Positions 903 through 55,082 of a stretch of 64,000 nucleotides of DNA are shown here, in pieces. A model generated the notes under the pieces. The model did not search any database. It saw only the letters and a program-made list of their open reading frames with translations, and was not told the DNA's origin. The stretch's first letter is position 1; each line of letters starts with the position of its first letter. A program made the translations under genes and the position numbers. The DNA is taken from NCBI GenBank assembly GCA_964035545.1, contig OZ037770.1:12638642-12702641 (forward strand), in the 5' to 3' direction. This DNA comes from Bugula neritina. Its lineage: Eukaryota; Animalia; Bryozoa.

Positions 903-3152
903 CTAATGATAAAACATTGACCTATACAGGCTGACTAAACTATCTTTATATCGGCTCATATAACTGTCTTGGTAACTGTATGTGTCAGTAATCAATGAGT
1001 CATACATTCTGTAATGGTGGACAACTCCAACTTCCGGCTTAACATTTATAATTTCATATCCTGGATAGCATTGGCGTACGTGGTGTACGTCTACAATATC
1101 AGTCCTATCAGTGTTTACGAGAACCTTACTCCATTGATACAAGTTGAAGACGCCAACTGTGTGGAGATACTGGAGGCTCCAGAGATGATGCCTGTTTATA
1201 AAACTGCCATTTGCTGACTTTGTGTTTCTGGGAAACATTTGTGAGTGATACACAAACGCTCCTGCAAATAGCAAAAATAGGTTAGCATTTGAAGATTACG
1301 GAGAGGCACTAGGAGGGTGGATATATTGGTTAGATTACTTGCTTAGTAAGTGGTAGGTTAAGAGTTCAAGGCCATTGATGATGCTAAGGATAAAGTTATA
1401 AGCAGAAATTTCAAGCAGGAGCCATTTTGCCAGCAAGTTTAAACACACAGTCCTTGATTCACTTAAAACACTCTCAATGGTTCTCATGGAATTATAGAAA
1501 CCTTACAATAAATATTTAATAAACTAACCTCATTATCATCTAACACAATTGACACGACAGCGTATAATAGCAAGTAAAGCATTAGCTTTAATAATCATTG
1601 GTCAACTAGCAGCCGTCATGTAAAGGAGCTAATAGCAATTACATAATTATGCTGCACATTACTTTTTAAGAATTGTCTTCTTTTTGCTGTTGTAAAGTAA
1701 TGGCTATTGGAAATCTCAAAGACACCCTCCCTCTTTTGGGTAGTAATTACCATTGAAATGAAACTTTAACCTCATAGTTTATGGTAATTGCATACTTTAA
1801 AAAAGAATCGAGTTGAAAATAGGGATGAAAACTCCTAAAAGTAAGACTTGATTTGTTGCAGTACAAACTTATTAGGCAACATAAACCACTTCAATCAAGT
1901 TGAGACAACAGAATTGTCTTTGCGTTTGCCCACGAATTTTTACAGCGCTTTATAAACTTAAATCTGCTAAAAGCCAGTCAACACTTTTACATATTTTTGT
2001 TTAATAAATCTGCCAAAATGAATTTTTAGGTAAGAAATAAATATTATGATGTTGTGAATAGGTAATTTCTATCTCATAACCTGCTTTCGGGTATTCAGCG
2101 CTCAAGGAAGCTACCATAGACGCCCAGTTTGTTGCTGATCTAGGCACCAGAACCTCGTCGATGTCTATGAACACAAGGTACTCTGATTCCACCTTGTGGT
2201 TGTACAGGCAGTGAGAACTTGCTGCTTTCTGTCCAAATGAATGTGTCTTATTTGAAAGTTCTCCCAACGGCCAATCATAGACGGTTGCTATTGACAACGA
2301 GTGTAGCATCTTTTTCACGTCATCCGACGCCTCGGCAATATAAAAGTAGAAGTGCTCAGCTCCAAAAAATGTACTCGCTGTGATAAAGTGCTTTATAGCC
2401 TTTGTGTTATTGTAGGCTAGTACGATAGGAGCCACACACGCCGCAAACTTATACTTTTTTGAACCATTTCCTTCTTTCACATTGTCTAGAGAAAATCTAA
2501 CTGCTGAGTTGCTACCATTGTTGCTGTAATGCAGAGAAACAGATGTTGGCTGAGATATACGCGTTGCACATGAATATATGTAACTATCATAAGCTTGTCC
2601 TTGCCATGGCACAAATGTAGATATTCGATAGTACACACTCAGTGGAACTAATTCTGATTGGTTAAAGCCATCATCCACCAAACATTGCAGATTCTCTAAA
2701 GTTGATATGTGATTGTCAGTCATTGGACCAAAGCCTACAAACTTGATAATGCTATGGGATGAGTCATAGTGTGCAGAATAGATGAGGCAGCAAGACTGAT
2801 CCGAGAATGAATAGAATTTATTGCTTTTTAAAGCAGCAGGTTTTTGTACTGTCTCTTGTGGAGTCTTTGGCGAAGACCTGTCCTCAGATTCCAACCTCTG
2901 CCAGTGTTGGTTACTGTTGTAGATAACTTCATTGCTGTGAAGATAATGGCGATATATTTTTTTATTTTCAAGTTGCAAATCAAGTTTCAGTGTTTCTGAG
3001 TAGACATCTGTTGGTTTGTTAGTAGCTGTTGCCGTGGTAACCGATGATAATGGCTTCATTAAAGTCTTGAGAATAGGTTGAATGGTTGCACAGATATATA
3101 TGCCAATACATCCAGAAACAAAAAATGCATATATCTTGGCTTTGTTCAGCAT
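903..3152 (-). CDS. Glycosyltransferase family 92 (DUF23)-like type II membrane protein; 2 coding exons (3152-2081, 1261-903)
   Basis: N-terminal hydrophobic anchor and GT92-like motifs (FAACVAP, FFGAEHFYFY, CLYNHKVESEYLVFIDIDEVLVP with DxD, KVLVNT, VVHHYR). Donor GCAG|GTTATG at 2081/2080 and acceptor TTTGCAG|GA at 1262/1261 are both phase 1, joining the two ORFs in frame. Confidence 0.85.
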
Positions 3153-5119: not shown

Positions 5120-8100
5120 CTATTTACTCGCATGATGTGTGATGTCATCATTTTCTGTTATCTTAGCTTTTACTATTGCCTCATCTTGCTTTACAGATTT
5201 CTTTTTACTCGCATGATGTGTGATGTCATCATTATCTGTTATCTTATCTTTTACTACTGCTTCATCTTGCTTTGCAGATTTCTTTTTACTCGCATGATGC
5301 GTGTTCTCATCATTTTCTGTTTTCTTATCTTTTGCTACTGTCTCATCTTGCTTTACAGATTTCTTTTTACTCTCAGGATGTGTGATGTCATCATTTTCTG
5401 TTATCTTAGCTTTTACTACTGCCTCATCTTGCTTTACAGATTTCTTTTTACTCGCATGATGTGTGATGTCATCATTTTCTGTTATCTTAGCTTTTACTAC
5501 TGCCTCATCTTTCTTTAGAGATTTCTTTTTACTCGCAGAGTGTGTGATGTCATCATTTTCTGTCATATTATCTTTTGTTATTGTCTCATCTTGCTTTACA
5601 GATTTCTTATTACTCGCATGATGTGTGATGTCATCATTTTCTGTTATCTTATCTTTTGTTATTGCCTCATCTTGCTTTACAGACTTCTTTTTACTCGCAG
5701 GATGTGTGATGTCATCACTTTCTGTTATATTATCTTTTACTACTGCCTCATCTTGCTTTACAAATTTCTTTTTACTCGCAGGATGTGTGATGTCATCATT
5801 TTCTGTTATCTTATCTTTTGCCATTGCCTCATCTTGCTTTACAGACTTCTTTTTACTTGCATGATGTGTGATGTCATCATTTTCTGTTATCTTATCTTTT
5901 GCCATTGCCTCATCTTGCTTTACAGATTTCTTTTTACTCGCATGATGTGTGATGTCATCATTTTCTGTTATCTCATCTTTTGCTACTGCCTCATCTTGCT
6001 TTACAGATTTCTTTTTAATTGCAGGATGTGTGATGTCATCATTTTCTGTTATCTTATTTTTTGTTACTGCCTCATCTTGCTTTACAGATTTCTTTTTACT
6101 CGCATGATGCGTGATGTCATCATTTTCTGTTATTTTATTTTTTGTTACTGCCTCATCTTGCTTTACAGATTTCTTTTTACTCGCATGATGCGTGATGTCA
6201 TCATTTTCTGTTATTTTATTTTTTGTTACTGCCTCATCTTGCTTTACAGATTTCTTTTTACTCGCATGATGCGTGATGTCATCATTTTCTGTTATTTTAT
6301 CTTTTACTACTGCCTCATCTTGCTTTACAGATTTCTTTTTACTCTCAGGATGTGTGATGTCATCATTTTCTGTTATCTTATTTTTTGTTACTGCCTCATC
6401 TTGCTTTACAGATTTCTTTTTACTCGCATGATGCGTGATGTCATCATTTTCTGTTATTTTATCTTTTACTACTGCCTCATCTTGCTTTACAGATTTCTTT
6501 TTACTCTCAGGATGTGTGATGTCATCATTTTCTTTTATCTTATTTTTTGCTACTGTCTCATCTTGCTTTACAGACTTCTTTTTACTCGCATGATGTGTGA
6601 TGTCATCATTTTCTGTGATCTTATCTTTTGCCATTGCCTCATCTTGCTTTACAGATTTCTTTTTCTTCACATGATGTATGATGTCATCACTTTCTGTTAT
6701 TATTTTATCTTTTTTTACAGTTTCATCTTGTTTAACAGTTTTCTTTTTACTTGAAGAATGTATGATGTCATCAATTTTTGTTTTCTTATCTCTTTTTACT
6801 GCCTCATCTTGCGCAGGCTTTTTTTTCTTCTTTACATGATGTATGATGTCATCACTTTCTGTTATAGCCTGAGTTATAGGCATTGTCTTAGAGTTTTGTG
6901 ATGAAATTGCCGACTGTTTCAAAGACTCCAATTCTTTGCTCTTATCTGACAGGCCCATCAACCTTTTGCTGGCTTCCTTGGACCACGTTGACTCCATGTG
7001 ATTGGTCGAAGGTGTTTTAACTTTGCTCGGCACATCAGTGGCTGAGGTTTTCTTTAAAGAACATTAACATTGTTAAATGATTAGTGTGCACTCAGTGAAT
7101 AACATTTTAAGCTTTAGATTAATTATAATTTAATAAACAAGTTATTTTAAAATTCACGATCGAGTTAGCTAGACACATCTTTTATGCTATTTTAATTTCC
7201 TATAGTGACATTATAGCACTTTGATGCAAGTTTTCGAAGTAATACTTTAATTATTAATTTTCTAAGTAAATTTATAAATTCCAGAATAAAAGTTGTTACA
7301 GGCAAAAACAATTTATAGGACATGTTTGAAACTTTTAGAAAAACCTAAGTAAAATTATTAAGATCTTGCAGCTTATATTTTGAATTAAAAAATACTTTAT
7401 CCTAATATTTTACAAAGAGTAGTCATTCTTAAAACACTTTAAAGATCAACAATTTAATACTTTGAGCTATGCATTGACTACATGACTAACATTTCATTCC
7501 GGAACTTTCAACCAGAGCTTCAAAACTAACTAACGCATTTAATACTGAGGTGATATACAGTTACTATGAAACTTGTACAAACAGAAGAGTTGAGCACAAT
7601 ACTTACTGAGGCACTCTGAGTCAGAAGTGATGCTTTAGAAGAAGGTTTCTTTCGAGTTGATTTCTTATCAAACGGCAGATCTTCGGCTGACAAAGAGTCT
7701 GTCGACTTTTTCTTGAACCCGATATTTCTAAACATACGAAACATGTTCAACAGAGCTCTTTGACAATTGGACTAGTAATGATGTCGATTTGCTTTAACTA
7801 AATAACAAAGTCTAATAGTTTTTTAAAAAATTTGGTAATCGACAAAATTTTTTTAATGAAAAAGAAGTATTTTGTCAATTATCAAGTTTACCCGATATAC
7901 AATTAAAAGTTAGATTTCTTTATAGTTATTCAGATAAATAATTTATGAAACCTAATATATTCTATATTCATGAAATCTTATATATTCTGTATATTATCAT
8001 AAAAAATAATATATGCAATTTTTTTATACGAATCAGAATTTTACTGTAATTGAATTTAGTTTTGTAAAGGAAGTAACAACATTGAAACGCTGCAAGCATG

Positions 8101-11100
8101 GTTTGCTATTGACTTAAATGCTGGTTTCTATGAAAGCATACTTGAGATTTGTATGAGAAAGTTGTTTCCTGTAAGATTTGATAACTCCAAGCAAAAGAGC
8201 TGCTATTATTCCTGCGGCTATAGCAGTGAAGAGCCATCCCCACCATGGAATCAAATCTACAATTTAATATTTAATAAATAGTAAAAATTAAAAAAAAAAA
8301 CTTACAGACAAAACAATATACTTATACGTATAATTTTTTCATATCATATATTTTAATACATCTATTTGTTACATGAATTAATATAAACTATCAAAATAAT
8401 TAATTATTTTTTTTATGAATAAATATAATGCATTGCCGTTACATTATTGCTTAAAACATTAGACAATATTATAAATAATTACACAGTAATTATTTAGACG
8501 TTGCATGTATGATACATCTGACAAAAGTTTGAGTATATCTAACTTAGGGGGGCAGTTGTGGTCTACAGGTTAGAGCGTTTGCCCAGTAGACACAAAGTCA
8601 GGATTTCGAACCCTTACAAAGGCCATTGGTATAATGTTAGGAAGAGCATTCATGCAGCTATAATTACTCCTGTGCCCCACAGGGATTGCTACTATAAATT
8701 TGTGTAAGCTTCTTTTTAACATATCTAACTTACCGAGTAGTTTAGTGGTAACCTTATTAAAAATCTGTCGCTGTGGCCGGGCCTCAACGCAACGTCCTGA
8801 CACTTTATTTGCTCTGCTCTCATCAAAGCATCTGCATGAACCCAGCACCGAGTTGCTGGATTCTACTAGAGTGATTGTTCTTTCATCGCAGATGGTTTCC
8901 CCGGCTTCATCCACCACCCAACTACAGTCTAGCTGGTTTCTGCATTTCACTGAAACGAAACACAAGCCAGGTGTTAGAAACGAACTGCACTATTATAAGC
9001 AGCTCTGAGTTGGGAGCAAGAGATAATTTTAGTTTTCAGTTGGGACTTAACTTCAAACTTGAGACCCCACACTAAGATCGTCCTTCACCTCCAACTGGGA
9101 GCTGCTTATAGCACAATTCATTAGAAACAAGCTAATACAATGCAATGTAAGGTTCATAGTTGGTAATTTCTAGAGTTACTTGATGTACTCCGAGCTAAAT
9201 AAATAGGCTAACTATACACTCATTTGAATGAAAGTACTATTTTCTTCCTTTGAAAAGGTGTGGATCAAGCAAGGAAGTTGTTTAGGGGACAAAACAATTA
9301 AAAATGTGAGCTACATAAACTTAGCTCAAACAATAATAAGAACAAGTTCCTAACTATGACCACAAAAAAAACAATTTTATATACTGAACACTATGCATAC
9401 GTTTCATTTGGTCAACTTGAGAAATATTATAATATGCACATTATATTATAATCACTACCTATTTTATATAATAATAGTATTTATTTGTATTTAAATATAA
9501 TTGGTATATCAAATTCTGTGGCCATATTCTGCTGTACTCACGCTACCTTCTCCTGGTTGACATCGTTGACTAGTTTTCCCGCTGGTTACATTCTGTGTAG
9601 TAGTGAGGACAAAGCCGTCAGGGCAGTAGCAGAAACCCAGCGGATGGCAAATACTAGAAGAAATTGTCTTCTCGCATAACTCTTTATCATTCTCACACGT
9701 TATTTCTGTTCTTATCTGCTTCTCAATGAAATCGTTCTCTAAAGAGAAAACAACTCCATCAACTTCAGCTGTAAATACAGTCAAAGTATCTTAGAGCATT
9801 TACATACTAAAAGAAGTTGCTTTGACAGCTAGGGAGCAGCTACAGTTTAGGACTTATAGAGCGCTTGTCTAGTTTAAACTCTAAGTCATGGACTCGCTTC
9901 ACACTATTAACATCTCAGAAAGCTTGAAGCATTTAATGTGGCTGTAAGAATTTAAAGTTCAACCTTTACAGATGTATCCACCCGAACCATCCTCTTCACA
10001 TATCAACCAGCTGTACAGACATGGACTGTCTCTGCAAGCATCTACAATACATATACCATTCACTCATCTGCTAATAGTAAATCTTGCAGTCTATTTATAT
10101 CGATACAAGCTTGCAGTTTTTAATGAAAAGAGATGAATGTTGAACTAGTCAAAGAGCGAAAAAAGTCACTTTGAAATTTATTTTAATCTCAAATAATTTT
10201 ACCAAGTTGAGAGCAGACAAATCTTAGTTAGCAAAAAAGTTAATAGCTAGCTACATTTGCTATCTAAATCTTAGACAGAACAAACAAAAAGTTGCTATAA
10301 TTAACCTTGAGTTGAGGTTGACTGAGTGCAGTAGCTGTTTAGAATTCTCAATTTTAGGGTTAGGGGTTTAGTTGGAACTTAGAAGCCCCAATTTTAAGCT
10401 TGACACCCCAACTACTGCACTTAGCTACCCTCCAACTTGGAGCTGTTTATAGCAAGTTTTGAAGTTAACATCTCCAGCTCCTTGGTTTCAGAATAAAAGT
10501 ATAGTATGTGATGACAAATTGCATTCACTTGTAGCCAGGCTGTTGGCATATAAACCTACCAGCTATGGAACAGGTGACTCCGGAGTACCCGGCCGAGCAG
10601 GTACAGGTGGGCGGTTCAGAGCTGTCACTACAATTTCCTCCATTGAGGCACTGGATTCTACCTCCAGCACAGGGAGTTTCCGCTTCCTCGCAGTATTCTC
10701 CCGTGTAGCCAATAGCTAACGAGCAATTGCAGGATATTGCATCATAGTCACACGTACCTCCGTGAAGGCATGTGATGTTTTCTACAAGAGAGGACAACTT
10801 GTATAGTATGACTTGACAATTTGTTAAATATTTACTCTATGTGTGGGGTTAAAATGTGCAAGTAAATTAAGATTAGTAAATAAGAAAATTCAAAAATCTT
10901 AAAAGCCGGTTCAAAAACCAGATTTTCATGCGAAGCTATCAACAACAGATTCTTGAAAGTGGTGCGTCAACTATTTTGGTTCTGATATTTAGTATTTAAT
11001 GTCTTTATTCAAATAGCAGAACAATGTTTTACTATCATACAAATGGGCAATACGTTTTATTTTGTTTTTGAAAGTGGTACTCAAATCTTTGCTATGTATA

Positions 11101-14100
11101 ATTGTTTAAAATCCCTTTTATTTCTACAACATTCTGCCTGTAGCTCATCGTAGTAGAAACTCTGAATAAAATCATACAACATACGCATGTCACAAGGATT
11201 GCATCCATCTGTACATAGTGGCAAATCTTCAGCAAAGTTATCAGCAAAGCTTTTTACATTATCTACAACATTATTATTATTTTTCTATAATTTATACACA
11301 TACAATCACATAATACTTATTGAAGCTTATCTACGCTCATTTTTACTCATAAAAAAGCTTTTGATAGGTTTTGAATAAGTAGTATTGTATATTAGACATA
11401 ATATTCTGATATCAAATGTTTACCAAACTGCTAAACACAATTTGCTCAACATTAATTAATTAGGCAACGGATCATGAGGCCTACGATCAGTTAATCTACA
11501 TTTTTTTGATATATACGACAGCAAAACCCGTGTTTTGAAACGCATACATTTGGTTTAGAGAAGGTTCTCAAAATGACATTTCAATGTAAACTAGAAACCT
11601 TAAAATTTAAAATTTAAACCTAAACTTGGTTTTAAAATTGGATTTAATATTAAACTTTTAAAGCATACATGCAACCATTAATCCTTCTTTGGTAGCACAC
11701 GATTGGTATTATAATTTAGATACACTCAGCTGCTAAACTTTCAGCAAAAACAAAAAATGTTAATGAAAAAAATACATCTTTTGCGTTCTACTTTCTTAGT
11801 GTAAATAAACAACGTGATATTATATTTTGGATAACATTGTTTTCACCTTCAGAGTTAATAGAAATTTATAAATTAGAATGTCATGTAAGATTCTAACTTT
11901 TAAATTTCATTCAACTTATATCTCTGAAGATGGATTATAAAGACATCCAAAATATAAGTTTATTTTGTTTTATATTTAAATTATTAAAGAAGTAAACAAA
12001 AAATGCATCTTATTTATTTATTTTTTATATTGATTTGCTGCTGCAGAAAATTTAGCAGTTGGGTATCTACATCATAATCCTAATCTTGTGTTCATTTTTA
12101 TTGAATAGAAGTTACTAGCCGTAAAGGTATATTTACACAAACATATATATAATGTATATAAACAGTCAAACACACCTAAACAAGTTTCTGTAGAATTATC
12201 ATCCAACGCGAGTCCAGGTGACGTGTAACTGATGTTTAGGAGGATCTGGGAGTGTCTTTCTGGCTGGTTATTGACTAACCTGATGTACGTATGAGGTCTT
12301 AGTATGTTCTCAGAGCCTGCAGATTGGTACCTCCAGTCACAAAGTACTGGTATATAATCTGCAGGTAAAGACCATGAAGTGTTACACAAGAGGAAATTTA
12401 TAATACGTGAGATTTAGGGATTCAAAAATGTACGCATACATTTTTGAATCCTCGGTTCTCATACACATGCATGCAATAAAAATAAAACGCATTATTGCAC
12501 ATGTTTGTTTGTATGGAAGTTTTCTGAACATTGCCTTAGCAGCTATATTAAATTTTGAAGGAGATTATCGTATCCTTTCTTTAGTGCATGGGTATGTATA
12601 AATAAAATAAAATCAATTAATAGTGTATAAGTAATTAAATAAATATGTCATGTTGCATTGCGGAATAAAAACACGCTCTAATGGCTTGGTTATTTAAATT
12701 CAAAATATATAAGTTTATATTTCGAATTTATGTAGTATGGTTTGTAGAGCTGATCATACTTGTTTTAGCGAGTATAAAATATGATGCAGTATCACTACAT
12801 TTTCAAACGTTGCATTATTCAAAGTTGAAGAGTTTGTAACATTATGGACATTAAGAGCTGTTTTACATGCATGTACAGTAATTTAGTTACACATATAGGC
12901 AACTTTTTAAGCTGCGCATCATACGAATAAATTTTTTATTTGGTGTTTGGAAACAATTTAATCAAGCAACAGTCATAAGTTCTCGCAAACCTAATCACCA
13001 CTTCATCAGAAGCAGTGATAGACATCTTCGTACCTGATGCACTAACATCACCGGAGTTTGCGGTCACATCTAGTACAGAAAAAGCTCGATGGTAGGCAAC
13101 TTTGTTCTCTTCTTGTTTATCTTCTATGTAAGCAGAATAAGTAACGTCCGTTCTTTCCTGGCAGCCAATGTATACCTACTAAACCAAACAATAAGTTGTA
13201 AAATATACAAGCATTGTGTGAAAATGATGCTCTTTTTTATAAGATCTGTAACATGAAAGTTCAATTGTTAAGTTCTCAGCTTGTCATAAGCTGCAGTTCT
13301 TTAATTGGTTATAAAAAAATGCAAAGGTAAAAATAAAACTTTTAACTGATTAGAATTTAAATTATTGCATAATAATATCTATATTCTGGCTTCAAAAAAG
13401 TTTTACCCTTAGAGTGTGAAATTAAAAAGTAAGTAAAACTGTGTAATTTAAAAATATTTAATATTAGGCGCAATTATATCAAAACAGATTAACAGTAAAA
13501 ATGCTGCATGTGGTACATTCGGTTTTTAATTTCACAATTTTCCTTTTAATGGTTGACTGAGAGGTAATGCTTATGTTCGAGAAATCCATGAAGTCTTCTT
13601 TACGCTTGTTTACTTTAAATATACATATTAGCATCCAATCATACATTTGCTAACTTCAAGTATGCTAATATCCAATCATATGCTTGCTTGCTTTCAATAT
13701 ATCATATAAAACTAGCAACCAATCACACACTTGCTAACTTTAAACATGACATATCATCCAATCACAACCTTACTTACTTTAAGTATACTATATAGCATCC
13801 AATCACACACTTGCCTTGCATGCAGCGAAGTAGTAATAAGAAAGCTTCTTTGTTATAAAAGGACAAGTCACAGTGACGTCTGCGTTTCTGCTCACGCTGA
13901 TGAGTTGGCTAGAGTTTGTCTCATTATTCCTGTATTCAACACCATCTACTCTGACCACCACATACGCTTGCACCATTTTATCTACAAACAGAACAGTACG
14001 TTGACATGCCTAATAAAATGGAAGATATTTCACATCTAAAACAGATTAAATTACAACTAAACTTTAAATAAATAAAATAACATCAACTGTGTTAGAATAG

Positions 14101-14669
14101 AAAAACTAAAGAATGAGTTGAAACTGGTGATTTGTAGTCAAAGTACCAATAATCTATCACTTCTGAGCTAATTTCTTTTTCTCACATTTTTCACACATGC
14201 TTTGCTTTGAATTTGGAAAAATATACTCTTATCGAGGCTAGTGTTGTGACAATACAAAGTATCTTTCATAAAAAGTAAAACAATATTTAGTTCTAGACTT
14301 CATTAGAATAAATACCTTGATCTCTAGAAGTCTGTCTGTAATTTTCACCCAAAAGTGTGCTGTCTATGAAAATCTGCTTTTTATTTATATATGATGCACT
14401 GCCGGAGGTCCGAAGAAAAGTTTCTAAATTATAGTAGTCACAAAATCAATATATTGTAAATGCAGCAGATCACTTAAATTGTTTTGTTTTAATTAACCAA
14501 TATACATAATATGCACACTTAGTTTCTATCAAACAATTAAATCAGTGCACGTGTGTGCGTGTGTGTGTGCGTGTGTGTGTGTGTGTGCGTGTGTGTGCGT
14601 GTGTGTGTGTGCGCGTGTTTGTGCGTGCGTGTGTGTGTGCACGTGCGTGTGTGTGCATGCGTGTGTGTG

Positions 14670-14760
<91 letters not shown>

Positions 14761-17700
14761 TTTTCTTTAACAATGCTGTGAAAGATGTAAAGAGAAATAT
14801 GCTATAAATAAGAAAATATGTACGAGTAGATCTGGCCAGTAAAGTAAGATACATACGGACATGTGGAGCTAAAGCCAATGCTGAACACTCCCCTATTGTC
14901 TGATCAGTTTCCGCAGTTTTGTCACAGAATATTATTCGGTGGTTTGGGAAGCATTGCTCTTTGATTAACCAGAATTCTTCAGCACCCTGAGACATTTCAT
15001 TGGACGAAAATGCAGTAGAGATATGAGAAGTGCAATCTAAAAATATGTATAGCTATACAGATATAATTGTTTTACTTTTATTGTTGTAGTAGATATTATA
15101 ATATCTTATCTTATTATATCATTTTGTATGCCATGATAAAAGCATTTCAGTTGCTATATATTGTAGCACATCATATTCTTTATATACAGACACACTCACA
15201 CACTCACACACTCACACACTCACACACTCACACACTCACACACTCACACACTCACACACTCACACACTCACACACTCACACACTCACACACTCACACACT
15301 CACACACTCACACACTCACACACTCACACACTCACACACACATATTATATTATATGTGTGCACATCTTATTCCATTACATTACATTATTACTTTATTGTA
15401 ACATGAAATATGGTGGAGTATTCATACTCACAGCTAGTACAAGCTGGGCAAGATGTATCTCTCCCACATTGTAATGATCTGTGTTCAAACCGTAGGGCTA
15501 TAAGAATATACTGCACACACTACATACCAGTTCGGTTTACTGCACAAAAGTATTATAGTAGAACAATTGTTTGTATGTAGCTTTACATTGCTTAATGCAT
15601 TTGAACGCAGTTAGCTGTAGCTTTAAGAAACTTTCAGAAATTTATTGTACACAAGATGTCAGTAGTTTATTGTTTTATCAACATCATCTAGTTTTTCTAA
15701 TTCACTTCTACTACAACTTGAACAAACAGTGGAAAGTTAAACCATGATTGCTAAAAGTTTAGCCATTAATTTTTAAACTTTATTTTAAAGTTGTTATGAT
15801 TTTCCAGCTGCCACAAAATTATTTAAAAAACTTCAACATGATTATTATTAGAGTTATCTCACCTCTACACTCTTCCAAAACGTCAACAGCCTCTACTTTC
15901 TCTTTGGTGTTCAGTTCATAATAAGAGAGAGGGTAGAGCTCAATGGGAGAACTTTTGTTATAGCAATGTTCTTCATAGACTTTTATATGAACTAGGATTG
16001 ATTTAAAATAGTCTTTGGGCTTTGGATCAAACATTATATTGGCAGCGTTTGTCCAGTTTGCTTCACAAAATACCGGAACTGATTCTATTAAAAGAAAATA
16101 CTCTCTAAACAATTTGTTAAATCGAAACATGGTTAAAACTAAAAAACTTCAGCTGCTATGTTCACCTTATGATAATTTTAGTATGCAGCCCAATTTGGAA
16201 AGTATAAAAGAAGGCACTCATGAAACAAACATAGTTCACAGTTATTGCAAATAATTAAATTATAGTTAAAAGCAATTAAAATTAAAATGATATATAACAA
16301 AATTTGATTAAATATTTTGATTAGATAAACATTAGCCTTAAAATCTTCAAGATGGTTATGCATACTGTTGGATGTCTCAAAGGCTATACACGGATATTAT
16401 AAATTAAACTGGAAGTTTAAATAGCAGGCTATGATAGACACATCTATATACCCACCTTGGTGGCCCTGTAGATTGAACTCATATTCGGTTATTGTAACAG
16501 TATACAGATTATTTTGATTTGCAGCAGCCTGAACTTGGACATTTGTTACCAGACGACATTCTACATACAGCTGCAAATTGAATCAAATATAGCAAACATA
16601 GTTAAGATGCCTGCTTATTCCACTACCGAACAACACAGAGTGGAGTTATAGGTGAGGAGTTAAGCTAACTTCTTGCATGCTTTGTAGAGCATTAAGGTTT
16701 AAATCAAAAGTAAATAGAAGTTTAGTAGATATGATCATGTAAAAACCAGTGCCCCCTTTGTCTTAGGAACCGTATATAGGTAATTGCTTTGTAATCAACA
16801 GTATAGCTTTGATAGATCTAAGTTAATGAATTGCCAGTTATACAGCTATGACTCATTATACATAATTTTTTTTTATTTTCTGTCCCATTTAAAACAAAGA
16901 CAGCTTCAAAAAATTTACTAATAGTAACAGGCTTTAATAAAATGAAAAATTTATTATTATCTGCGTATATATTGGTTTGTGTTGCACAGAGGGTCAAAAA
17001 ATATTAATTTAAAAATAAGATATCTTGTTTTCAATTATAAAAAAGTTATAGGTAGTTATATTGACTGTTATATAGCTATCTAACCTGGTTTATAAATATG
17101 CATATTTCACTGCAAAACAATTACACACAATAATCTCCTATTAATAAGTACACAGTATAACATTTCACTATACCACCTGACTGTTTATAGCTTCTTATAA
17201 ACTTGAATTCAAGCAATGACACAGTTGAGTAACTGCATGTCAGTTGCAATTTGCTGCCAAATTTATATTCTAATTAAAATGCAATGCAACTAGGGAAAGA
17301 TTCAACTTGGCCACATTGAATTTCTGACTGAAAATCGTAAAGGCATAAACACAACTTACGTTATGTTTAAAAAAACTGAAACTATCATTTGACATTCCTT
17401 TACCTATATAAATCTCAACTGACCACCCAGTATGTGAAGTTTATAGAGTTGATATATTTTTTCAGTCTTATATCTTTGCTGCATAAATCAATTCAACTTT
17501 AGAGACACTTAGACTGAATACCAACAAAACTGACCCAAAAAATGTATACAGAAAAGTTTAAAAACTGTAATATAGTAACCTGTTAACAAGCACTTACCTT
17601 TAAGTCAACAATGATGTCCGGATTTAGCACCTCCATTTCACAGGTGATGTTGTACCTTTCATTCTGTTTGACTGAGACAGTCTGGTTGTATGATATATAA

Positions 17701-20700
17701 TCAGTAGATACTCTCTGAGAAGACCCATCACTATGACCAGTAAACTGTACCGTAATATTTCTCAGGAACTGTTGTGGCCAATAAAACAGAGAGCAGTCTG
17801 GTGACGTGGGTTTACCTTCGCAAGTTGTGGTGTAGCTTAGTTGACCATAACCACCACCAATCTCTACAGGCCTCACTGTCTGAACCAGCTCTTGGCCTGT
17901 AAGTATAACACACAGTAAACCAGTTTACTCTATACTAGAAACGACAATTAGGTTAGCATGAATTTATTTAATAAATTCAAGCTTCTAGTTTGTGTTTCAC
18001 TCACTGTAATATATACTAGAAATGACAAGTTAGTATTTTTCATTATTGTATATATTTTGTTTTAAAGTTAGGATAGCAACATAAAGTTATTTATATATTA
18101 GCCTTTTATTTGGAAAGAAGATGTAAAATTATCATGTGGCATATTATAGCATTGTTATTATACAAACTTTTAGGGGAAAGCTGTGAAAAGCTTTCAGTCA
18201 AATAGCTAATGTTTGATTTATATAACAGTTTTCCCTCTGTACTATAGAACAATTCAAAGCGTGCCATATATATACACATAACAAAACATATAATATTTAT
18301 TACAAACTTATACAGTCAGGTCAAACAACATCAAACATGTTACAATACCAGCCGCTACATTGTGGAAGAATGTTGCTGCGCATGTTTTCATCTTGTTACA
18401 GGTCCTCAAGAAGAAGTTACCACAGAACTCTGTGGCCGTCCAATAGATATTGCTGTTTAGTTCATCAACCTTCAGCTGTGGCTCTATACACTGTTTCACT
18501 ACAAATGGTGCCAAAAATATACCAACTGTAAAATGTTATAATATTTGATGGTAAACGTAATGTTATAACAGCTCTTTAGCTTTTTTAAGGTTTAAACCTT
18601 GTAGATAGAAAATTAGTAGCTTTAAGTCAATATGAGAAAAGTTGTGGCTCATGATTACTCTTTGTAATAATCCCATCCTAATATGCCCCTTGTAAGAATT
18701 TCTCATTTCTACCATTTATTTATTTTATTTGTAAAGTTATTTGATGATATTGGTTGAATCAAATACTGATAAAGAGACTAAACCACATAGTTATAGTATT
18801 TTTCTTTAAAGCATATTTAAAAATATTATTTAAAGTACAATTGTTGATTAAAAATTGCGGTACAATGCATACACAGGGTATACATTGTACCACAGACGTA
18901 TGGTGTGTGAAACAAATAGTATAAATGCTTATTGAATTTATAGAAATTGAAAAGATGACCTTAAAATTATTAACTACATGATATACAACTATTTAAAAAA
19001 TGGGAAAACAATGTCTATATATATTACTGTTCTAGCAAAATTTAAAATAATACATTATTCAATTATGCAAAAAAAATATATTCAATATTTAAATAATTTC
19101 AATATTAAACTGAGTTGAATAATCATATATTGCATAGAATATAAGCTGTTGGAGTAAAAGCTATGAAAAGCTTTTAGCTATAATGTATATGACTGATCTT
19201 TTGCTGACATTATGTTTTTACTTGCATTGCACTGTTCAACTGCAGCTTAAATGTCCTACATATAATAAAAAATAATTCCTCATAATTCTACAAACAATAT
19301 TTAAATATAACAGCGAAAAATTTTCACAGCTGTGTAACAAAACGATTTATGCAGTTTATGGTTACAAAACATAATTGAAGCAAACGTCATGCAAGTATAG
19401 CTAGTTGTCATTGTGTAATTCTATAAATAAATTTTATAAATAAATTCTATAAATAAATTCTATAAATTAATTCTATAAATAAATTCTATAAATAAATTCT
19501 ATAAATAGAATACAAGCACCTGTTGCTTGTTTACCAACCCTTATAGGATGTCACTCTATATTGGCCACTTACAGGTATCTGATCCACAACAAATACTCTG
19601 TTATGTGTAGATTCTATCATGATTGGCTACAAATCAAATTGCAACTATATAAATAGAATACGATTGGTCAGATAAGTTTCTTTCCTAAAACAGTTCTAAT
19701 TAAAAAAAGTTATCAATATAATAAAATAATATAAGACATGCAACCTATATTGTTTTTCGCAAGTTCAGAATAAAGTTGAAAATTTATTATAATTTTGAAT
19801 TAATTGTAATTTCAAATATTTTGAAAGCAAATTAAAAAGAAGTTAACAGAAATAAAACCAATTAGCAATCTACTCAACTCTTTCAGATATTATCATATCA
19901 CAATACCTTGTGAAGTAAGCATGATTCAACTGTCTGAGAGCTTAAGTCAAACACTTTCATATTAGCCTCAGTTCTTGGCACATTATTATTGCAGACTGAG
20001 GAAGGTATGCTAGCATTGAAATGCTCGTCCCAACCTTTAAATAGGCGCAGTATGCCCCGGTCAGTGTCAGCAATGGCAAACAAGTTATGCTGAAGATGGG
20101 TAGCTATTCTGTTGTAATAAATAGAAATGAACAGAATTATTCTTTAACTATAAATGCAAAATTCAATAATTATAGAATTTAGACTACTTAAAAGTTTATG
20201 GCACTTTTGTGTAGCTTAGTGTAAAAGAGCAGATGTTATCAGCTGATCATCATGCTGTTTCCTAATTTACAAACTCAAAGGAGTTGTTAGTATTCCTATA
20301 CTTTTCAACCAATGATATCGATCGTTTGACAAAATATGTCATATAATTGCGGTTGTTTTAACTACTCGTTGAATAAAAAGCTTTGCTGTTATTCAATTGC
20401 AAGTTTTCTTTTACTTCCGCAATCATTAATTTAAAAACTAGATTGATAACATCATTAATGCTATACAATAATTATATTGACATAAATATTTTGCTAACAG
20501 CAAAAAGAAACTAAAATGTTTTCTTTGCAGTTTATATAGATCGGTATTTTTTAAATATATAGAACTTTGAAGAGCATTGGTATACCAACCTGTTGCTGTG
20601 GACTGCAGTGTTGGCCAGGCCAGGGGTGTGTGTGGAGAGAAACTCTGTGGAATTACTCACAGAGTAGAGTGAAAAGCTGCCGGCAGAGTTCAGCATGTAA

Positions 20701-23700
20701 AACAGCTGACTCTTGCCATGAAATATGCTGCTGGCAGAGATCTGGGGGTTCAACAAAACTTCGGAACTTGTGTCGATATTAAACTGTCAAAAAAAGAATA
20801 AAATTAACATCACTAATAGTTTGCCAAAATTGGCTTGCCTTTTACATATAATGACAATAAGTATAATATAGCAAATTAAAAAGAAAATCAAAATTTGCAA
20901 TCTTTCTTAAGTTAGTGAAGCATGTTTAGCGTAGTTGTCATTTTTCCAACTTGCAAAAACAAGACTGTGATGATGACTTTTATTAGCAAACCTCCTTGTG
21001 TTAAAGATAACACTATAAAATTTACAATGCATTTTATGCTAGAGTTGGTGAAAAAATTAAAAAATTAAACGGCTTCCATATATATAAACTAGATCCATTT
21101 AGTAAATTTTAATGCTTAGAGTAGATAAAATTGATCACTATTTTTACAATTACAAACTAAAAAAACACACTATCTTTGAAATGTACTACGAGCTCCTCAG
21201 CTTATATAAAAAAATTGAACCAGCTTAAATATAAGAATGACACAAATAACATGCTTTTTATAGCAGCTACAAACTAAAAGTTGGGTAAGTTCTGTTAAAT
21301 AGATTTATTCACAATTCCGATAGAGACAGATGTAACCCTGCATTAAAAATCTTAAGTGAGTTACAGGTAGGTTACAGGTAGGTTACAGGTAGGTCACAGG
21401 TATGTTACAGGTAGATATTTCTCACTTGTCTGATAAGTTCTCCATCTGTGAAATACAACCGTTCTGTTTGAGGGTGACATACAAGGGAGGCAATTCTAGT
21501 CTCAACAGCTGTTTGAGAATCAACGATTGTAGCTTCTTGGTCTGGAAAATGATGACACTAGCTGATATAATTTGGATTAAAACTATACGTTCTTGTAATA
21601 TATATTGACAGTATTTATACTGTCAATAACTTAAAATTTGCTGTTACAACAATAATGCATAGAAAATATATTTGCTAGCTTTTGGTTAATGTTTAGGCTT
21701 TACGTCATAGATAAAAAGTTCATTGCCTCTTGTCCACAACTGTGCTTATGGCCGAGTTTGAAAGATTGTAAGTTGTACCACATTTGATGTTACATATGCT
21801 AATAGCTAGTTTGTAAACTAAAATATTTTTTTCTTCTCTCTCACACACACACACACACACTCGCACGCACTTGCACGCACTCGCACGCACTTGCACGCAC
21901 TCGCACGCACTTGCACGCACTCGCACGCACTCGCACACACACGCACACACTCGCACACACTCATACACACTCGTAGACTCGCATGGTTTATACACTTTAT
22001 CGTACTTACTTTCATACTGACATTGTCCAAACAATAATTCGGGTTCTGTTAACTGTAACATACTGATACAGTGACTTCCAGCTACATAGTATACTAAGTT
22101 ATTTGTACCACATTGAGTTATATAATCCACCATACCATTGTTGTCTCCTAAAAATATGTTCAACGTATTACAATATGCAACCTAATCAATCAAATGCCAG
22201 CAGTCAAAATATACAAAATGATTTAGTAAAATTCTAAAATAATTTTCAGTCACTGCTCTGTATTTTTTATTTTTCTAGACTAACATTATATTAATAATTA
22301 CTTACTATATCCATGAAGAACAAAATCTGTCATAAAAATAGTTGTGTTTGTTGTGGAACTTGATATTTGTAGAGACTTTGCTCTAATTGGCTGAAATGTA
22401 TATCCTTCTGTAAAATTAGCAGGGTGGGTACGTGTGAAGTCCGAGCCAATTGATATCCACGCTGAATGTCTGCTCCATCTATACTCTATCTTGTAGAATT
22501 CATTTATAACACTTGAAGTTGCTAAATGGGGTGTATATATATATTTGTTACGATAAAAGCTTTTAATGAACTCTTGAAGTTAATAATGAATACTTCAAAA
22601 CTTTTATCAACTATAAACCAAATCTGAAAATATATTCATTAGTTAAAAAGAAAATTTACCAGGTCGTTGCCCTGTCTGATCAAAATACATTTCTGTAAGC
22701 GTGTAGAGATACTTGAGGTGGACAACCAGGAAAGTAAAAGGATAAGTTGGTAGTGGATTCAATACAATTTGTGGAATTATTATAGAACTTGTTTGTACGG
22801 CTGGTTCGTGAACAGCCAGTGCCCTTGTTTCATCCCCGAATGGCAGAATGCTTAATACTCCACGAAATGACATTTTCACATCGTCTGCTTTTGAGGTGGC
22901 TACAAATACAAGAATCATGCGGACAATACCAAAATATTATTAGAAAAAATTAATATATAAATAATATACACAAATAGTATTTATAAGTAAATATATAACA
23001 CGCATACACACGCGCACATGCATGCGCGAGCGCACACACACACACACACACACGCACGCACGCACGCACGCACGCACGCACATAACGTAGACGATAGATC
23101 AAAAATCACAACCGATGATAAGTACCATTTGATTGGTCAATAGAATTTTAGCAACAGTAATTATTTTATTTCTACCACATTTCTTTATTTGACAATTTTC
23201 TACTGTTGGTATCTCGTGCAAGACTCATTCATGGACTATTTATTATGTATTTCCGTCGATGAGTGTGTGGCTGGTCATAATAACAAGAGAAAATCGTCAC
23301 ACGATTTTGTGTGAGGCCAGGCTTTTACACAGATTGAGATACATATATGCGTATATATTTATCTATTTGTTTACTTTTTGATTTATTTCTTTATTTATTT
23401 ATTCATTTATTTATTTTTAACTAGCCAGCTTTTTAAGACTTACATTTAAACAAATATCTGAACCCTTGTTCAATGGCTGCCCTATTTGAATTGTTGACTG
23501 TTATAACACTGGTGGTGTGATTGATGCTGTTTTCTACTACTAAGACAGTCGTATTATGCTGGTGTCTTAAAACCATAATATCCTTAATAATGTGATTTTC
23601 AGCAGTGATAAAATCTATCTTATCTGGATTCAACTGTAGATAGGGAGGGTCAGGTGACGTCCCGTCAGCCTTGCAGTGCAATCTAAAAGATTTACATTTG

Positions 23701-25079
23701 TAATTATTTTTAACAAAAGCATCTTTAGCCTATAGGATAGTAGTTAGGGCTGTGACAACTGCAAGGAGTTATCCCCCTTCCCACACAAAATAATTCAAAT
23801 TGTATTCCTTAGGCTGCTGGAACATCCATGTCTGTCATCAGTTAACATAGCGGAAACTGTAAACTCTAAAAATAAGTTTTTCAATAGAGCATACTGAAAT
23901 ATATTCCGTCACATTATTTTCTTAACCTATAATAAATTAATATGTTATAGTAATCCCAACAAACTGTTCAGATAGTGATTGTTTGTACTTAGTTTGTAAA
24001 TAAAACAAAACCAATAATTGTTTATTCAAACCTGGACTTTTTAAAAAAAATTGTAGCTGACATTACAACTAAATAGTGTTATATTATTTTTTCTTGGTAT
24101 ATTATATTATTGTAATATATAGTATTATATTACAATATTATTTTATAACTATATAACATTGCATCATATTATTATATTTTAGTACTATAATATTGCATTA
24201 TATGTAATATTATAATGTAAAATATTATTACATTATAGTATAATTTTATACAATAATATATTGTATAGTAATGTTACGGTAACGTATTATCCTATTGTAG
24301 TTATATTTTGTCATATTATAACGCTACATAGTTGTTTGTCTGTACTAAACTGTATCACTGTTTATTTTTCTTTATTTACAACATTCCAAAATATGTTTTC
24401 TTTTAAAGTATCCCATTTCCTATATACTTATTATATCTAGTGCAATCTTCATAAACATGATATCCATTATAGATGTCTCAATTTTCCAAGAACAGTGAGT
24501 CTATTGAGGTTATAATATTATTATTTGCTATTATAAGTGAATGTAAAAAGTTGAATCATAACCTGAAGTTTTTTCTAAATAGTAGACTTTAAACTACCAA
24601 AGAATTTCTCTGACTAAACTCATTTTAATTAAAACTATTTGTTATATAATGTGATGTGAAAAAATTCAGGTAAAAATTTATTTAGCACACTTGCCGTAAT
24701 AGACGCAGTAGTAACTTATAGTAATTCGCTTTTGAGATTTCTTTTATAAGAAAATATGTTAACTAATTTAATAGGGCCCTAAATTAAAAAAAAATGAAGA
24801 ATTATATAGATTTAGCATTTCTAACAAAAAACTAATAAAAATATCACTATAAAATATATTATTATAAAACACACATCGTTGTGATTTACTAATACTCATA
24901 GTAATTATACTTTATAATATTAACATTTTATAGCTATAGTATAAAATATATTTATATTCAAGTAGAACATGCTTATAATATGATGGCCATGCACATAAAC
25001 CAATTGAGTGTTTCATAACGTACCTGCTATAACATCCTATGAAAATCATAAAAACAAACTTCTTCACTAAGCTGATCAT
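5120..25079 (-). CDS. Large type I transmembrane protein (~2007 aa, 26 coding exons): signal peptide, F5/8C-like, NHL/YWTD-like propeller, 2x Cys module, EGF, EB-like, TM, repetitive cytoplasmic tail
   Basis: Hand-built exons, all phase-compatible, total 6024 nt: 25079-25024, 23682-23444, 22899-22660, 22521-22306, 22147-22010, 21541-21426, 20783-20590, 20108-19907, 19626-19539, 18525-18349, 17896-17598, 16570-16456, 16084-15863, 15497-15432, 15036-14857, 13981-13815, 13175-13034, 12358-12176, 11262-11185, 10781-10560, 10041-9964, 9768-9547, 8949-8734, 8256-8142, 7727-7607, 7051-5120. N-terminus [43 protein letters not shown]...GYTGEYCE spans a junction. [28 protein letters not shown]. Individual boundaries may be off. 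Confidence 0.75.
5123..6865. repeat. Coding 81-bp tandem repeat (~19 near-perfect plus ~3 degenerate units) encoding 27-aa [27 protein letters not shown]
   Basis: Units start every 81 nt from 5123 to 6581 and then degenerate. The minus-strand frame is open throughout. Confidence 0.95.
8142..8256 (-). CDS. Transmembrane-helix exon (part of the 5120-25079 gene; missed by the ORF track)
   Basis: TTGTAG|AT acceptor; translates [38 protein letters not shown]; donor AA|GTATGC; basic residues follow the helix. Confidence 0.8.
8548..8680 (+). mobile_element. tRNA-derived SINE, diverged intronic copy
   Basis: A-box-like TGTGGTCTACAGGTTAG and B-box-like TTCGAACCC, followed by CAAAGGCCATTGGT..TGTTAGGAAGAGCA..ATAATT.CTCCTGTGCC, which is shared with the copies at 35833-36048 and 52419-52633. 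Confidence 0.7.
8993..9112. mobile_element. Short palindromic MITE-like element (family copy 2, intronic)
   Basis: TATAAGCAGCTCTGAGTTGG ... CCAACTGGGAGCTGCTTATA inverted ends. Confidence 0.65.
10290..10458. mobile_element. Short palindromic MITE-like element (family copy 3, intronic)
   Basis: TTGCTATAA...GACTGAGTGCAGTAG ... CTACTGCACTTAG...CCAACTTGGAGCTGTTTATAGCAA. Confidence 0.65.
10560..10781 (-). CDS. Exon encoding two EGF-like domains (part of the 5120-25079 gene)
   Basis: CLHGGTC...CNC...GYTGEYC and PC...CLNGGNC...[12 protein letters not shown]; phase-1 splice sites at both ends. Confidence 0.88.
14545..14760. repeat. (GT)n/(GCGT)n microsatellite, intronic
   Basis: Directly visible. 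Confidence 0.95.
15189..15341. repeat. (ACACACTC)n 8-mer microsatellite, intronic
   Basis: Directly visible. Confidence 0.95.
19418..19506. repeat. (ATAAATTCTATA)n 12-mer tandem repeat
   Basis: About 7 units directly visible. Confidence 0.85.
21835..21972. repeat. (CA)n plus (CGCACGCACT)n compound microsatellite
   Basis: Directly visible. Confidence 0.9.
22998..23082. repeat. (CA)n/(CGCA)n microsatellite
   Basis: Directly visible. Confidence 0.9.
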
Positions 25080-25709
25080 TCTAAATTACAATAAAGTTGA
25101 GCTAACTATTAACTATTTGGCAACAGAAGCACGTAATTTCTGCACTTATAAAATATAACACAACGCAATGCTTAAGTCAGTTGAAACAGTCTATTGTTGG
25201 AATTATGCAACCCAATGATCTTTGTGACTTTGTTATTCAAAGAGCATCAAAGGGTTTAAATTCATTGCTGATACATAGTGCAAAATAAAAGTCAATTGTA
25301 ATGCTGGTATTGGAAGTTTAATCTCCCAAGCATAAAGAAATTGATTCCTTTATAAACCACCAAAATAGAAAACAGAATAAGTGAAAGATATTATATGTAA
25401 TATGAAATAAAATATGATATTACATATTATATATTACCATGTTATAACATATGATATTCACTATGATACATAATGTAATGTTCAATATATTATTATAACA
25501 TTATATAAAATAATATTATAATGCAAAATAATTTACTCTGCTATTTAATATAACATATTACAACATAATATAATATAACTCAATGTATATAATATTTTAG
25601 GCAGAAGATATGATATAACATCATAAAGTGTTAAAAAATATTATACTGAATGTTTCAGCAATTGAAAAGCCTATACTAGTAGTTTCACATTGCACCTTTT
25701 CAAAGCTTA

Positions 25710-25905
25710 GCATTAATCACTCCATCAGACGAGCGAAACCAAACTCTAAGTAACTGAGCAGACGACTCATAATTCTCTTCATTCCGGCAGCTCTTCAAGT
25801 GACTCTGAACCCCTGTCAGCCACCAGGAGACCAACTGGCAGCAACGAAACAGCGAGTATATCACCAGGTAGATGCAGTATATTAAAAACAGAATGTTGAC
25901 AATAT
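25710..25905 (-). pseudogene. 5' fragment of a sulfotransferase-like paralog
   Basis: Translates IVNILFLIYCIYLVIYSLFRCCQLVSWWLTGVQSHLKSCRNEENYESSAQLLRVWFRSSDGVINAKL*. Near-identical to the N-termini of the four intact genes, then homology stops; no ATG in the expected position. Confidence 0.85.
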
Positions 25906-27296
25906 AATATTTACAAGTACATCAACATATATTATATGAACGCAATTAGGTTATGTAACTGTAGGCTCAAACTATTTGCTGCTTATATCTGAGCTTTAGA
26001 GCGAACAGCTACCCTCTCCAATCTATCACTAAACCAGCATTGGGAATTAGAAGCAGGACACAGTAAATGGGAGGATAACTCCCACTGCTCATTGGTAAAT
26101 ATCATCAATATAAACTATAATAAAGGCACTATAATTTGTTCCAGTATTATATATAATAGAAGTATTATAAAAGCATTTTGCTTCTTTAAATAATTATTGC
26201 TTCACTCAAACTAATAACTAAATATGCATCATAATAAATTAAATAGCTTTGAGACATTCAACTCATGCTTTCATTATACTCATATATTGTAGAGTATAGA
26301 TTTTCAGTAAATGCCAGACATTAATTGTATTTCTTATGTCAATGACTTGTGACTGACTAACATAGACACTGCTGAGTGCGAATATTAGTCTGGCTGCTGC
26401 TCTAGTATATCAGCAAACAGTACATTACACACATAATTCGTTCTAGCTGCCATATTTCATTCCATGCACGGGAACGTGCAAGTTTGTATTCGATACTGAG
26501 CATCCTGTGCTGGTCTATTCCATGCATAGGAACGCAGTATATTAGAACTTAGACAGCCCTGATGTTGTATTTTCATTTTTAAACACATACTATATTCTTG
26601 TAAAGTAGATGAATGAAAAACATGAAGACAATTTGCCATAGTTTAATGTAAAACTTGGCTTGTTTTAAAATAATGCAGTCATGTGATAGTTACAAAACAT
26701 CGGTATTAAAAAGTTGAAAAACTACTTGACAATAATTTTAATAAATCACCTTCCTTATTGCCACTCAACTTGCATATAATTATGTGGCATACCCCAATTG
26801 AGTGGATAAAGGCACAAAGTTGTGTATTATATGACTGTGCCTTATTGTTGACCACCAGGTATCATATCTTGTTAGATAATTATATTATAGCCCATTATAT
26901 AAGTATCATACGATATATCATGTTACCACATCATGCATATAAAATCATATTACTGTATTATATCTTCTTATATTTTATTATATCATGTCATAACATATTA
27001 TATTACATTGTATCGTATACCATATCACATGATATTATATCGTACATGTGTTATTGCATTACATGATTGCATTAGGCAGCATGAGCAATAAACAATGTTG
27101 TTAATAATGCTGTATAAAACATTACCCAGATTGTACATAAAGCTGGAAACCTTAAATTTAGTACTTATCCAGATGTTAGACAGTTATGATAAATCATTAG
27201 GTTGCTATGCAACATATCTTGCCAGATCCAATATATTCTCCTTCTATTACAATAATTTATGCTAGCTTAGCTGAAACCTGGCAGATTGCCAGGAAT

Positions 27297-54845: not shown

Positions 54846-55082
54846 GGTGCGCAAGTAGGAGCTACTGAGATGCAATACAGTTATGATGTGATATGAATCT
54901 ACAGTATTCCAGTGTTTGCTTATCAGTTAACTGCTAACCTGGATTATTTTGCACCATCAAACATGCAAATAGTGACACGGTATGACAAGTGATTGGTGGG
55001 CTACTAAATAATGTAATATGTGGTGTAATCACGTGTCTGTTACATAAACTATTTTTATTACTTCATCAATGATAAGCTCAAG

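Follow-up and report, generated by a model that had tools for sequence, protein, structure and literature searches.

Among described receptors, those closest to the gene reported here are the LDL receptor/LRP/pro-EGF group, the receptors with discoidin-type domains (DDR1/2, the neuropilins and Caspr/neurexin IV), and the teneurins, together with the lumenal domain of SOQ1. The gene lies on the minus strand, at positions 25079-5120, of a 64,000-nucleotide stretch of the bryozoan Bugula neritina (GenBank assembly GCA_964035545.1, contig OZ037770.1, forward-strand positions 12,638,642 to 12,702,641; contig 6 below). This whole stretch is referred to as the window, and coordinates are positions in it unless another contig is named. 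Like the LDL receptor group, the predicted protein has EGF modules, a single transmembrane (TM) helix and a non-catalytic tail, and its blade motif is closest to YWTD among Protein Data Bank (PDB) sequences; unlike that group, it has no LDL-A repeats, no EGF pair flanking the propeller and no NPxY motif, and it carries two modules between the propeller and the EGF domains as well as a jelly-roll candidate in front. Like DDR1/2, the neuropilins and Caspr/neurexin IV, it is a predicted type I receptor that may have a jelly-roll of the F5/8C type close to its N-terminus, but it lacks kinase, CUB, MAM and laminin-G domains, and its jelly-roll fails the Pfam F5_F8_type_C model; in contrast to the discoidin domain receptor tyrosine kinases, no kinase match was obtained in its exons 22-24. 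The blade motif also resembles NHL, and teneurins likewise combine EGF domains with an NHL propeller. Teneurins have type II orientation and a YD shell, whereas the window protein is predicted to be type I with its EGF modules by the membrane, and Pfam scans of its exons gave no YD-type match. The window protein is, in this company, an ordinary kind of invertebrate mosaic receptor.

Sequence comparison indicates a genuine gene at the locus, split into many exons, under selective constraint and coding for a surface protein that crosses the membrane once. The gene is single-copy, and its product is probably a type I glycoprotein of ~1,930 residues that serves at the cell surface in adhesion or ligand capture. 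From the outside inwards, the predicted order is a signal peptide, an 80-amino-acid (aa) module, a divergent (discoidin-like) jelly-roll, a six-bladed YWTD/NHL-type propeller, two copies of a cysteine-containing beta-rich module, a five-module EGF-like stalk, a membrane helix and, last, a cysteine-free tail rich in Lys, Asp, Ser and Thr with no catalytic domain. An extracellular ligand, matrix or glycan partner would be bound by the jelly-roll and propeller, a head that the module-EGF stalk would hold away from the membrane. The protein may thus act as an adhesion or ligand-capture receptor, with any signal passing via proteins that dock on a disordered tail, in which Ser/Thr sites of the basophilic-kinase and CK2 types are numerous. 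This role is the most economical one to assume because there is no catalytic domain and no tyrosine motif, and because a recognition-type head stands on an EGF stalk. The window gene alone in its family would have duplicated the module and gained an in-frame 81-nucleotide (nt) minisatellite in its last exon.

Selective constraint is visible in comparison with two contigs from a sibling lineage. L003 (Logan, run SRR4020080), which came from a word search with exon 11, spans exons 10-11, and L019 (a Joint Genome Institute metagenome) carries exons 18-24 in order. The exons are 90-99% identical to these contigs with no indels, whereas the introns are 78-91% identical with many indels, and exonic substitutions fall mostly at third codon positions. 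In L003, exons 10-11 are 91% identical (0 indels) and the flanking introns 78% identical (113 gap columns); exon 11 differs by 7/1/18 substitutions at first, second and third codon positions, and the ratio of non-synonymous to synonymous substitution rates (dN/dS) across exons 10-11 is 0.11 at a dS of 0.33. Against L019, dN/dS is 0.09 for exon 18, 0.00 for exon 19, 0.03 for exon 20, 0.04 for exon 21, 0.15 for exon 22 (the TM exon, 97% identical), 0.27 for exon 23, whose GTAAGT donor is kept, and 0.23 for the unique part of exon 24. This last part has 5/5/13 substitutions by codon position, an open frame with no indel or stop, and a conserved acceptor AG; its dN/dS is near that of an intron control frame (0.26), and constraint on it appears only weakly shown. 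The ectodomain values cover six exons (10, 11 and 18-21) and compare lineages rather than alleles, exons 2-9 lying outside the comparison. The sibling lineage is probably a cryptic species of the B. neritina complex, because the dS values and the intron identity of 78-91% fit; cryptic species of this complex have been described (PMC11480708).

Relatives in the same genome also support the gene structure. Searches of the assembly (216,009,554 bases, 321 sequences) with exons 4 and 11 returned only the locus itself on contig 6. A weak match of exon 8 on contig 7 led to paralogue B (~C7:15.764-15.776 Mb, plus strand), which has colinear matches to exons 2, 5, 6, 8, 13 and 16-22 at 24-58% identity; exons 20 and 21 led to paralogue C (~C7:15.624-15.633 Mb, minus strand), which is likewise colinear. 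Each paralogue spans 8-11 kb and, starting with the N-terminal module and ending with the TM helix, keeps the order of the window gene. Amino-acid identity to the window gene is 23-58% (exon 18, 48-55%; exon 19, 47-58%; exon 20, 46% in both; exon 21, 45-48%), and by this measure the paralogues are old and divergent. In paralogue B, exons 5+6 and 8+9 each form one continuous open frame; these fused frames confirm the 8/9 junction and support the 5/6 join, although the two genes differ in their residues at 5/6.

With a profile of exon 20, the window gene and paralogue B were each recovered in a sibling copy at 99% identity, and a further relative turned up on a marine metagenome scaffold of the European Nucleotide Archive (L018; ERZ23498713, scaffold_40765). 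This relative is equidistant at 43-47% identity and has two EGF-like exons and a TM exon in order; the start of the TM helix is conserved in both paralogues and in L018. An exhaustive phmmer search of 1.84 billion representative proteins with exon 4, a 71-aa half-domain, found no true homologue. Its four matches with E < 0.001 were rejected as summed weak, repeat-driven matches to unrelated repetitive proteins, three with bacterial-type Pfam domains (one CHU_C/PKD) and one an ARID protein. A word search with the unique part of exon 24 gave zero matches, and a literature search turned up no described family with the layout of the window gene. By these comparisons the gene is a member of a small family, apparently bryozoan-restricted, with at least three members in the genome and at least one relative elsewhere. 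The first-pass annotation, made from the letters of the window, had recognised no named family, and this agrees with the tests run, in which none matched: the only relatives found are the two paralogues, the sibling copies and the one metagenome fragment. Part of exon 3 has a degraded copy that stands alone on chromosome 1 (L010, G000:C1:33581153-33584257, ~1534-1658, minus strand); the copy covers ~47 aa, with 72% identity over the main 36-aa stretch, and a deletion and a stop mark it as a pseudogene fragment.

The gene model consists of computed exon lengths, phases and junction codons, and domain searches were run exon by exon. The starting data were the stop-to-stop open stretches of the minus strand from 25085 to 5120, which include many protein-like pieces. 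A first chain, obtained by dynamic programming with generic splice-site scores and codon log-odds, had 22 exons; bonuses for skipped protein-like stretches gave an over-predicted chain of 31 exons, from which a chain of 26 exons and 1,967 aa was kept. The refined model has 24 exons (5,805 nt, ~1,934 aa), is phase-consistent, uses GT-AG splice sites except for one GC-AG, and has zero stops inside exons and zero stop junction codons. Comparison with the sibling lineage or the paralogues shifted the boundaries at 18498, 16570, 13815 (GC donor), 10041 and 9964. Neither the AG at 18491 nor that at 10063 is kept in the sibling contigs, and the acceptors were therefore moved to 18498 and 10041; for exon 19, L019 keeps both the 10041 acceptor and the 9964 donor. 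An alternative acceptor at 10062 was rejected, its AG being gone in L019, as was an alternative frame at 13182-13120, which matched paralogue C through DNA-level similarity only. The best-supported donor of exon 15 is of the GC-AG type (AAG/GCAAGT, 13809-13814, minus strand), as judged from the paralogues, where conservation extends to the exon's last Cys.

The first-pass annotation had joined 26 minus-strand exons in phase into a 2007-aa frame. The in-phase minus-strand chain holds; the exon count and length do not, the best model having 24 exons and ~1,934 aa. Two of the 26 exons were discarded: 11262-11128, when joined to the strong acceptor at 10781, yields the junction codon TAA, and it has a counterpart in neither paralogue, and the 43-nt exon 9131-9089 contains an in-frame TGA in L019. 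The latter is also unneeded because exon 20 ends at a GAAG/GT donor, a position common to both paralogues. The description of the gene as hidden, visible only as scraps of open reading frame, is true only of a prokaryote-style list of such frames; the assembly has an Ensembl gene build (PMC11480708).

All exons given below are on the minus strand. Exon 1 (25024..25079) begins with ATG and encodes an 18-residue hydrophobic N-terminus, a putative signal peptide in keeping with the one annotated earlier; its donor is CAG/gtacgt, and it has no paralogue or RNA support. Exon 2 (23444..23682) encodes the N-terminal module of ~79 aa, with three NxS/T sites, a weak colinear match in paralogues B and C (E 3.5e-4) and no Pfam match. 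An immunoglobulin domain considered for exon 2 was rejected, as the apparent closing Cys arises from reading into the GTAAG donor. Exon 3 (22660..22899), which aligns with both paralogues, and exon 4 (22306..22521) form the first and second halves of the discoidin-like domain. In exon 4 a W, an F, the motif P-x-R-A-x-x-L and G-Y are conserved in all three paralogous copies. Its ESM features lie at 0.96 to F5/8C clusters, and its ten best named matches are all F5/8C; shuffled sequences reach this level about once in 100. In hhalign against F5/8C exons of this genome, P-x-R-A of exon 4 aligns with their canonical motif (P 0.022, probability 2%). Exons 3-4 are a weakly supported jelly-roll candidate, very divergent if F5/8C at all; the discoidin-like segment proposed earlier thus gains a little from the ESM and hhalign results and nothing from Pfam or the PDB profiles.

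Exons 5-10 (18421..22147) encode ~270 aa, each with one segment of ~25 aa around a hydrophobic-aromatic-x-Asp core, and are the candidate propeller blades: exon 5 (22147-22010), exon 6 (21541-21426), exon 7 (20783-20590), exon 8 (20108-19907), exon 9 (19626-19539) and exon 10 (18498-18421, its acceptor set by the sibling contig). A blade profile (A5), built from 16 segments of three genes picked by eye for the motif, was compared with all PDB sequences. The top match was the YWTD propeller of the LDL receptor (1IJQ, E 4.4e-5, five repeated stretches), followed by other LDLR and LRP8 chains and then by the NHL propeller of SOQ1. Paralogue B has a sub-threshold Pfam NHL match (PF01436, E 0.006, 17 bits vs a cut-off of 20); in the window exons themselves Pfam gave no NHL match, and Ldl_recept_b was undetected at E up to 1. 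The ESM features of exon 8 (0.76) lean faintly to propeller families. These exons probably form six blades of a YWTD/NHL-type beta-propeller, in line with the blades first annotated; because the by-eye segments bias the profile, we call the propeller supported rather than proven.

Behind the propeller lie the two copies of the cysteine-containing module. Copy 1, beta-rich and with conserved Cys, comprises exons 11 (17896-17598), 12 (16570-16456; extended to 16570 by paralogue alignment) and 13 (16084-15863), and copy 2 comprises exons 15 (14009-13815; GC donor), 16 (13175-13034) and 17 (12358-12176). In paralogue B a single exon is matched by both exon 13 (z 8.0) and exon 17 (z 6.7), and the exon before it by exon 16 (z 4.6). 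Since the paralogues have this module once, the window gene has two copies, and it is copy 2 (12176..14009) that lies colinear with the module in paralogues B and C. Between the copies stands exon 14 (14861..15036), a 58-aa four-Cys segment with a weak donor (CAT/gtccgt), for which no paralogue match was found; it is the internal exon with the least support. A PDB profile search with the Cys module gave empty or chance matches.

Exon 18 (10560..10781; 11 Cys) encodes two canonical EGF domains: Pfam EGF (PF00008) matches two stretches with E 6e-8 and 33.2 bits, vs a gathering cut-off of 21.5. In Pfam runs on every open stretch of the locus, EGF alone scored above its cut-off, and LDL-A was found in no exon. 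EGF-like cysteine spacing recurs in exon 19 (9964..10041), a short four-Cys module, in exon 20 (9547..9768), a spacer plus a six-Cys EGF/EB-like module and the most conserved exon of the family, and in exon 21 (8734..8949), a six-Cys module plus extracellular stalk. The two or three EGF domains first annotated are thereby extended to two canonical and three divergent EGF-like modules. The two modules then called EB-like are better read as divergent EGF-like, as the EB model stays below its cut-off (exon 20, E 0.035; paralogue B, E 0.0018). Exon 22 (8142..8256) encodes the single TM helix of the earlier annotation (hydropathy 2.46 over 19 residues), followed by basic residues as in type I orientation. 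Before the helix there are 1,217 residues with 54 Cys and 20 NxS/T sites; after it there are ~700 residues and no Cys.

The tail begins with a juxtamembrane cytoplasmic segment rich in Lys and Ser (exon 23, 7607..7727). The last exon has 644 codons: a unique, hydrophilic part of 62 aa (6866..7051) and a repeat part (5120..6865) of ~21.6 copies of an 81-nt (27-aa) Lys/Asp-rich unit (Lys 22%, Asp 12%), ~580 aa in all, ending in TAG at 5122-5120. Tandem Repeats Finder gives 89% matches and 0 indels for the array, which has no other copy in the genome, is lacking in both paralogues and is present at the orthologous place in the sibling. The sole tail Tyr is juxtamembrane, in exon 22; exons 22-24 contain no NPxY and no YxxPhi motif, and exon 24 contains 18 basophilic-kinase and 25 CK2-type sites. 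No exon gave a Pfam kinase or other catalytic match. The non-catalytic tail of ~690 aa in the first-pass annotation is therefore upheld in length and in the lack of a catalytic domain; most of it is young minisatellite, whose translation is unproven. The introns of paralogue B (L013, G000:C7:15767000-15776999) and paralogue C (L015/L016, G000:C7:15620000-15639999) are packed with minisatellites of many units, which give long spurious open frames in several frames. We regard the process that filled these introns as the same one that placed the 81-nt array in the last exon of the window gene.

Several observations count against parts of the receptor reading. Exons 3 and 4 and their paralogue copies gave no Pfam F5/8C match (PF00754) at E up to 1; across the whole genome Pfam found 37 canonical F5/8C exon matches (28 above the curated cut-off), of which 0 lie at the locus or its paralogues. 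PDB searches were empty or returned chance matches, whether the query was a single exon or a paralogue profile of either jelly-roll half. Pairwise similarity among the propeller exons is not significant in an internal-repeat test, and the by-eye choice of blades biases the profile toward YWTD-like matches. About 430 ectodomain residues have no fold match: AlphaFold models exon 11 as all-beta at a predicted local distance difference test score (pLDDT) of 52 and exon 13, with its paralogues, at 42. The structural check suggested with the first-pass annotation was carried out on these two single exons, and its confidence was too low for fold comparison. The array repeats bear no sign of protein-level constraint. 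Exons 1 and 14 are without comparative support, and word searches with exon 11 and with the unique part of exon 24 found no transcript support, so that all junctions are predictions.

How the message ends bears on the length of the protein. The receptor could be short-tailed, its message ending in or just after exon 23 (at a stop below 7529 or another 3' end), with the array untranslated or intergenic and open by chance; we consider this unlikely, though not negligibly so. Both paralogues lack the array and have short tails, and the plus strand too is open across much of the array. Diversity among the array units shows no third-position bias (0.072/0.083/0.085 by codon position), the 32 distinct variants divide into 8 synonymous and 24 non-synonymous, near the neutral expectation, the neutral chance of meeting no stop is ~0.3, and the first repeats have a dN/dS of 0.7 vs the sibling. 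Against a short tail stand the perfect GTAAGT donor of exon 23, the exon 24 acceptor AG kept in the sibling, and a phase out of exon 23 that fits the sole fully open minus-strand frame. The substitution pattern, dN/dS (0.23) and intact frame of the 62 unique codons also tell against it, as do 1.7 kb of array without indels at a period that is a multiple of three. The right phase, the period, the lack of indels and the conserved splice sites likewise favour translation of the array itself. The array is young, and its translation is plausible but unproven.

Other readings concern what the protein is. A fast-evolving member of the LDL-receptor/pro-EGF group, acting as an endocytic cargo receptor, would account for the LDLR and LRP8 propellers that head the PDB matches of the blade profile, and for the EGF modules, single TM helix and non-catalytic tail; we think it improbable, given that no exon holds an LDL-A repeat, the propeller has no directly flanking EGF, the tail lacks NPxY and YxxPhi internalisation motifs, and Pfam Ldl_recept_b goes undetected even at E up to 1. 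The first-pass annotation had raised self/non-self or gamete recognition. Such a polymorphic receptor, with colony-fusion or gamete specificity in a variable ectodomain, would suit a colonial animal for which the literature search turned up no bryozoan allorecognition gene; the protein would fit as a surface molecule, restricted to its lineage, whose head is of the recognition type, and the length of its repeat tail may vary between alleles. Unlike allorecognition proteins of the Hydractinia Alr or Botryllus FuHC type, however, the compared ectodomain exons are under strong purifying selection (dN/dS 0.11, 0.09, 0.00, 0.03 and 0.04, thus 0.00-0.11 over six exons, between lineages and not alleles, with head exons 2-9 uncovered). 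The gene is also single-copy, with paralogues that are old and divergent rather than a cluster of recent variable copies. On these two grounds a hypervariable allorecognition or gamete determinant is disfavoured, and we give it very little credence. A chance still smaller than slight attaches to two neighbouring genes having been fused in the model, one for a secreted jelly-roll and propeller protein and one for an EGF-TM protein. The halves have no RNA link, and exon 14 and some mid-region junctions are weak, but the order head, module, EGF domains and TM helix recurs in both paralogues within 8-11 kb each, and the refined chain is free of stops in its exons and junction codons.

The reading as a type I adhesion or ligand-capture receptor can also be carried further. 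The gene might found a family of receptors restricted to bryozoans, with an undescribed ectodomain module of ~200-230 aa, present in two copies behind the jelly-roll and propeller head. In that case a coding minisatellite would have built a multivalent tail of ~580 aa from 27-aa phosphorylatable units, possibly a length-polymorphic scaffold or a condensate-forming signalling platform. We hold this extended version to be rather unlikely.

The window is AT-rich (~33% GC), microsatellite-rich and clearly eukaryotic. Upstream of the receptor gene is a cluster of four intronless genes of ~460 aa, at 28270-29652 (minus strand), 31255-32628 (plus), 33567-34958 (plus) and 53487-54875 (minus), with weak sulfotransferase-domain matches (Sulfotransfer_1, E 2e-5). 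The cluster is accompanied by a truncated N-terminal fragment just upstream of the receptor gene (25703-25921, minus). Its members at 33567 and 53487 differ hardly at all and are in opposite orientation, on either side of a retrotransposon. A BEL/Pao-type long terminal repeat retrotransposon with long open gag-like and pol frames (Peptidase_A17, E 7e-48; integrase; DUF5641) lies at 44468-49152 (plus). Two adjacent open frames of 421 and 117 aa at 38209-39973 (minus), the longer without a Pfam match, possibly belong to a transposase-like element. Downstream of the receptor gene is a glycosyltransferase family 92 gene (E 3e-21; 2001-3152 and 903-1274, both minus), seemingly of at least two exons.

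Bryozoans are among the molecularly least studied animal phyla. What is new in this analysis is the pair of colinear paralogues on chromosome 7, the distant metagenome relative, the duplicated cysteine module and the young 81-nt minisatellite tail. As it stands, the gene opens no long-standing question; it is a documented example of how a bryozoan surface receptor is assembled, by phase 1-1 module shuffling, by module duplication within the gene and by in-frame capture of a minisatellite. Should the modules turn out to have a new fold, or the repeat tail a function, the gene would be of moderate interest for receptor evolution.

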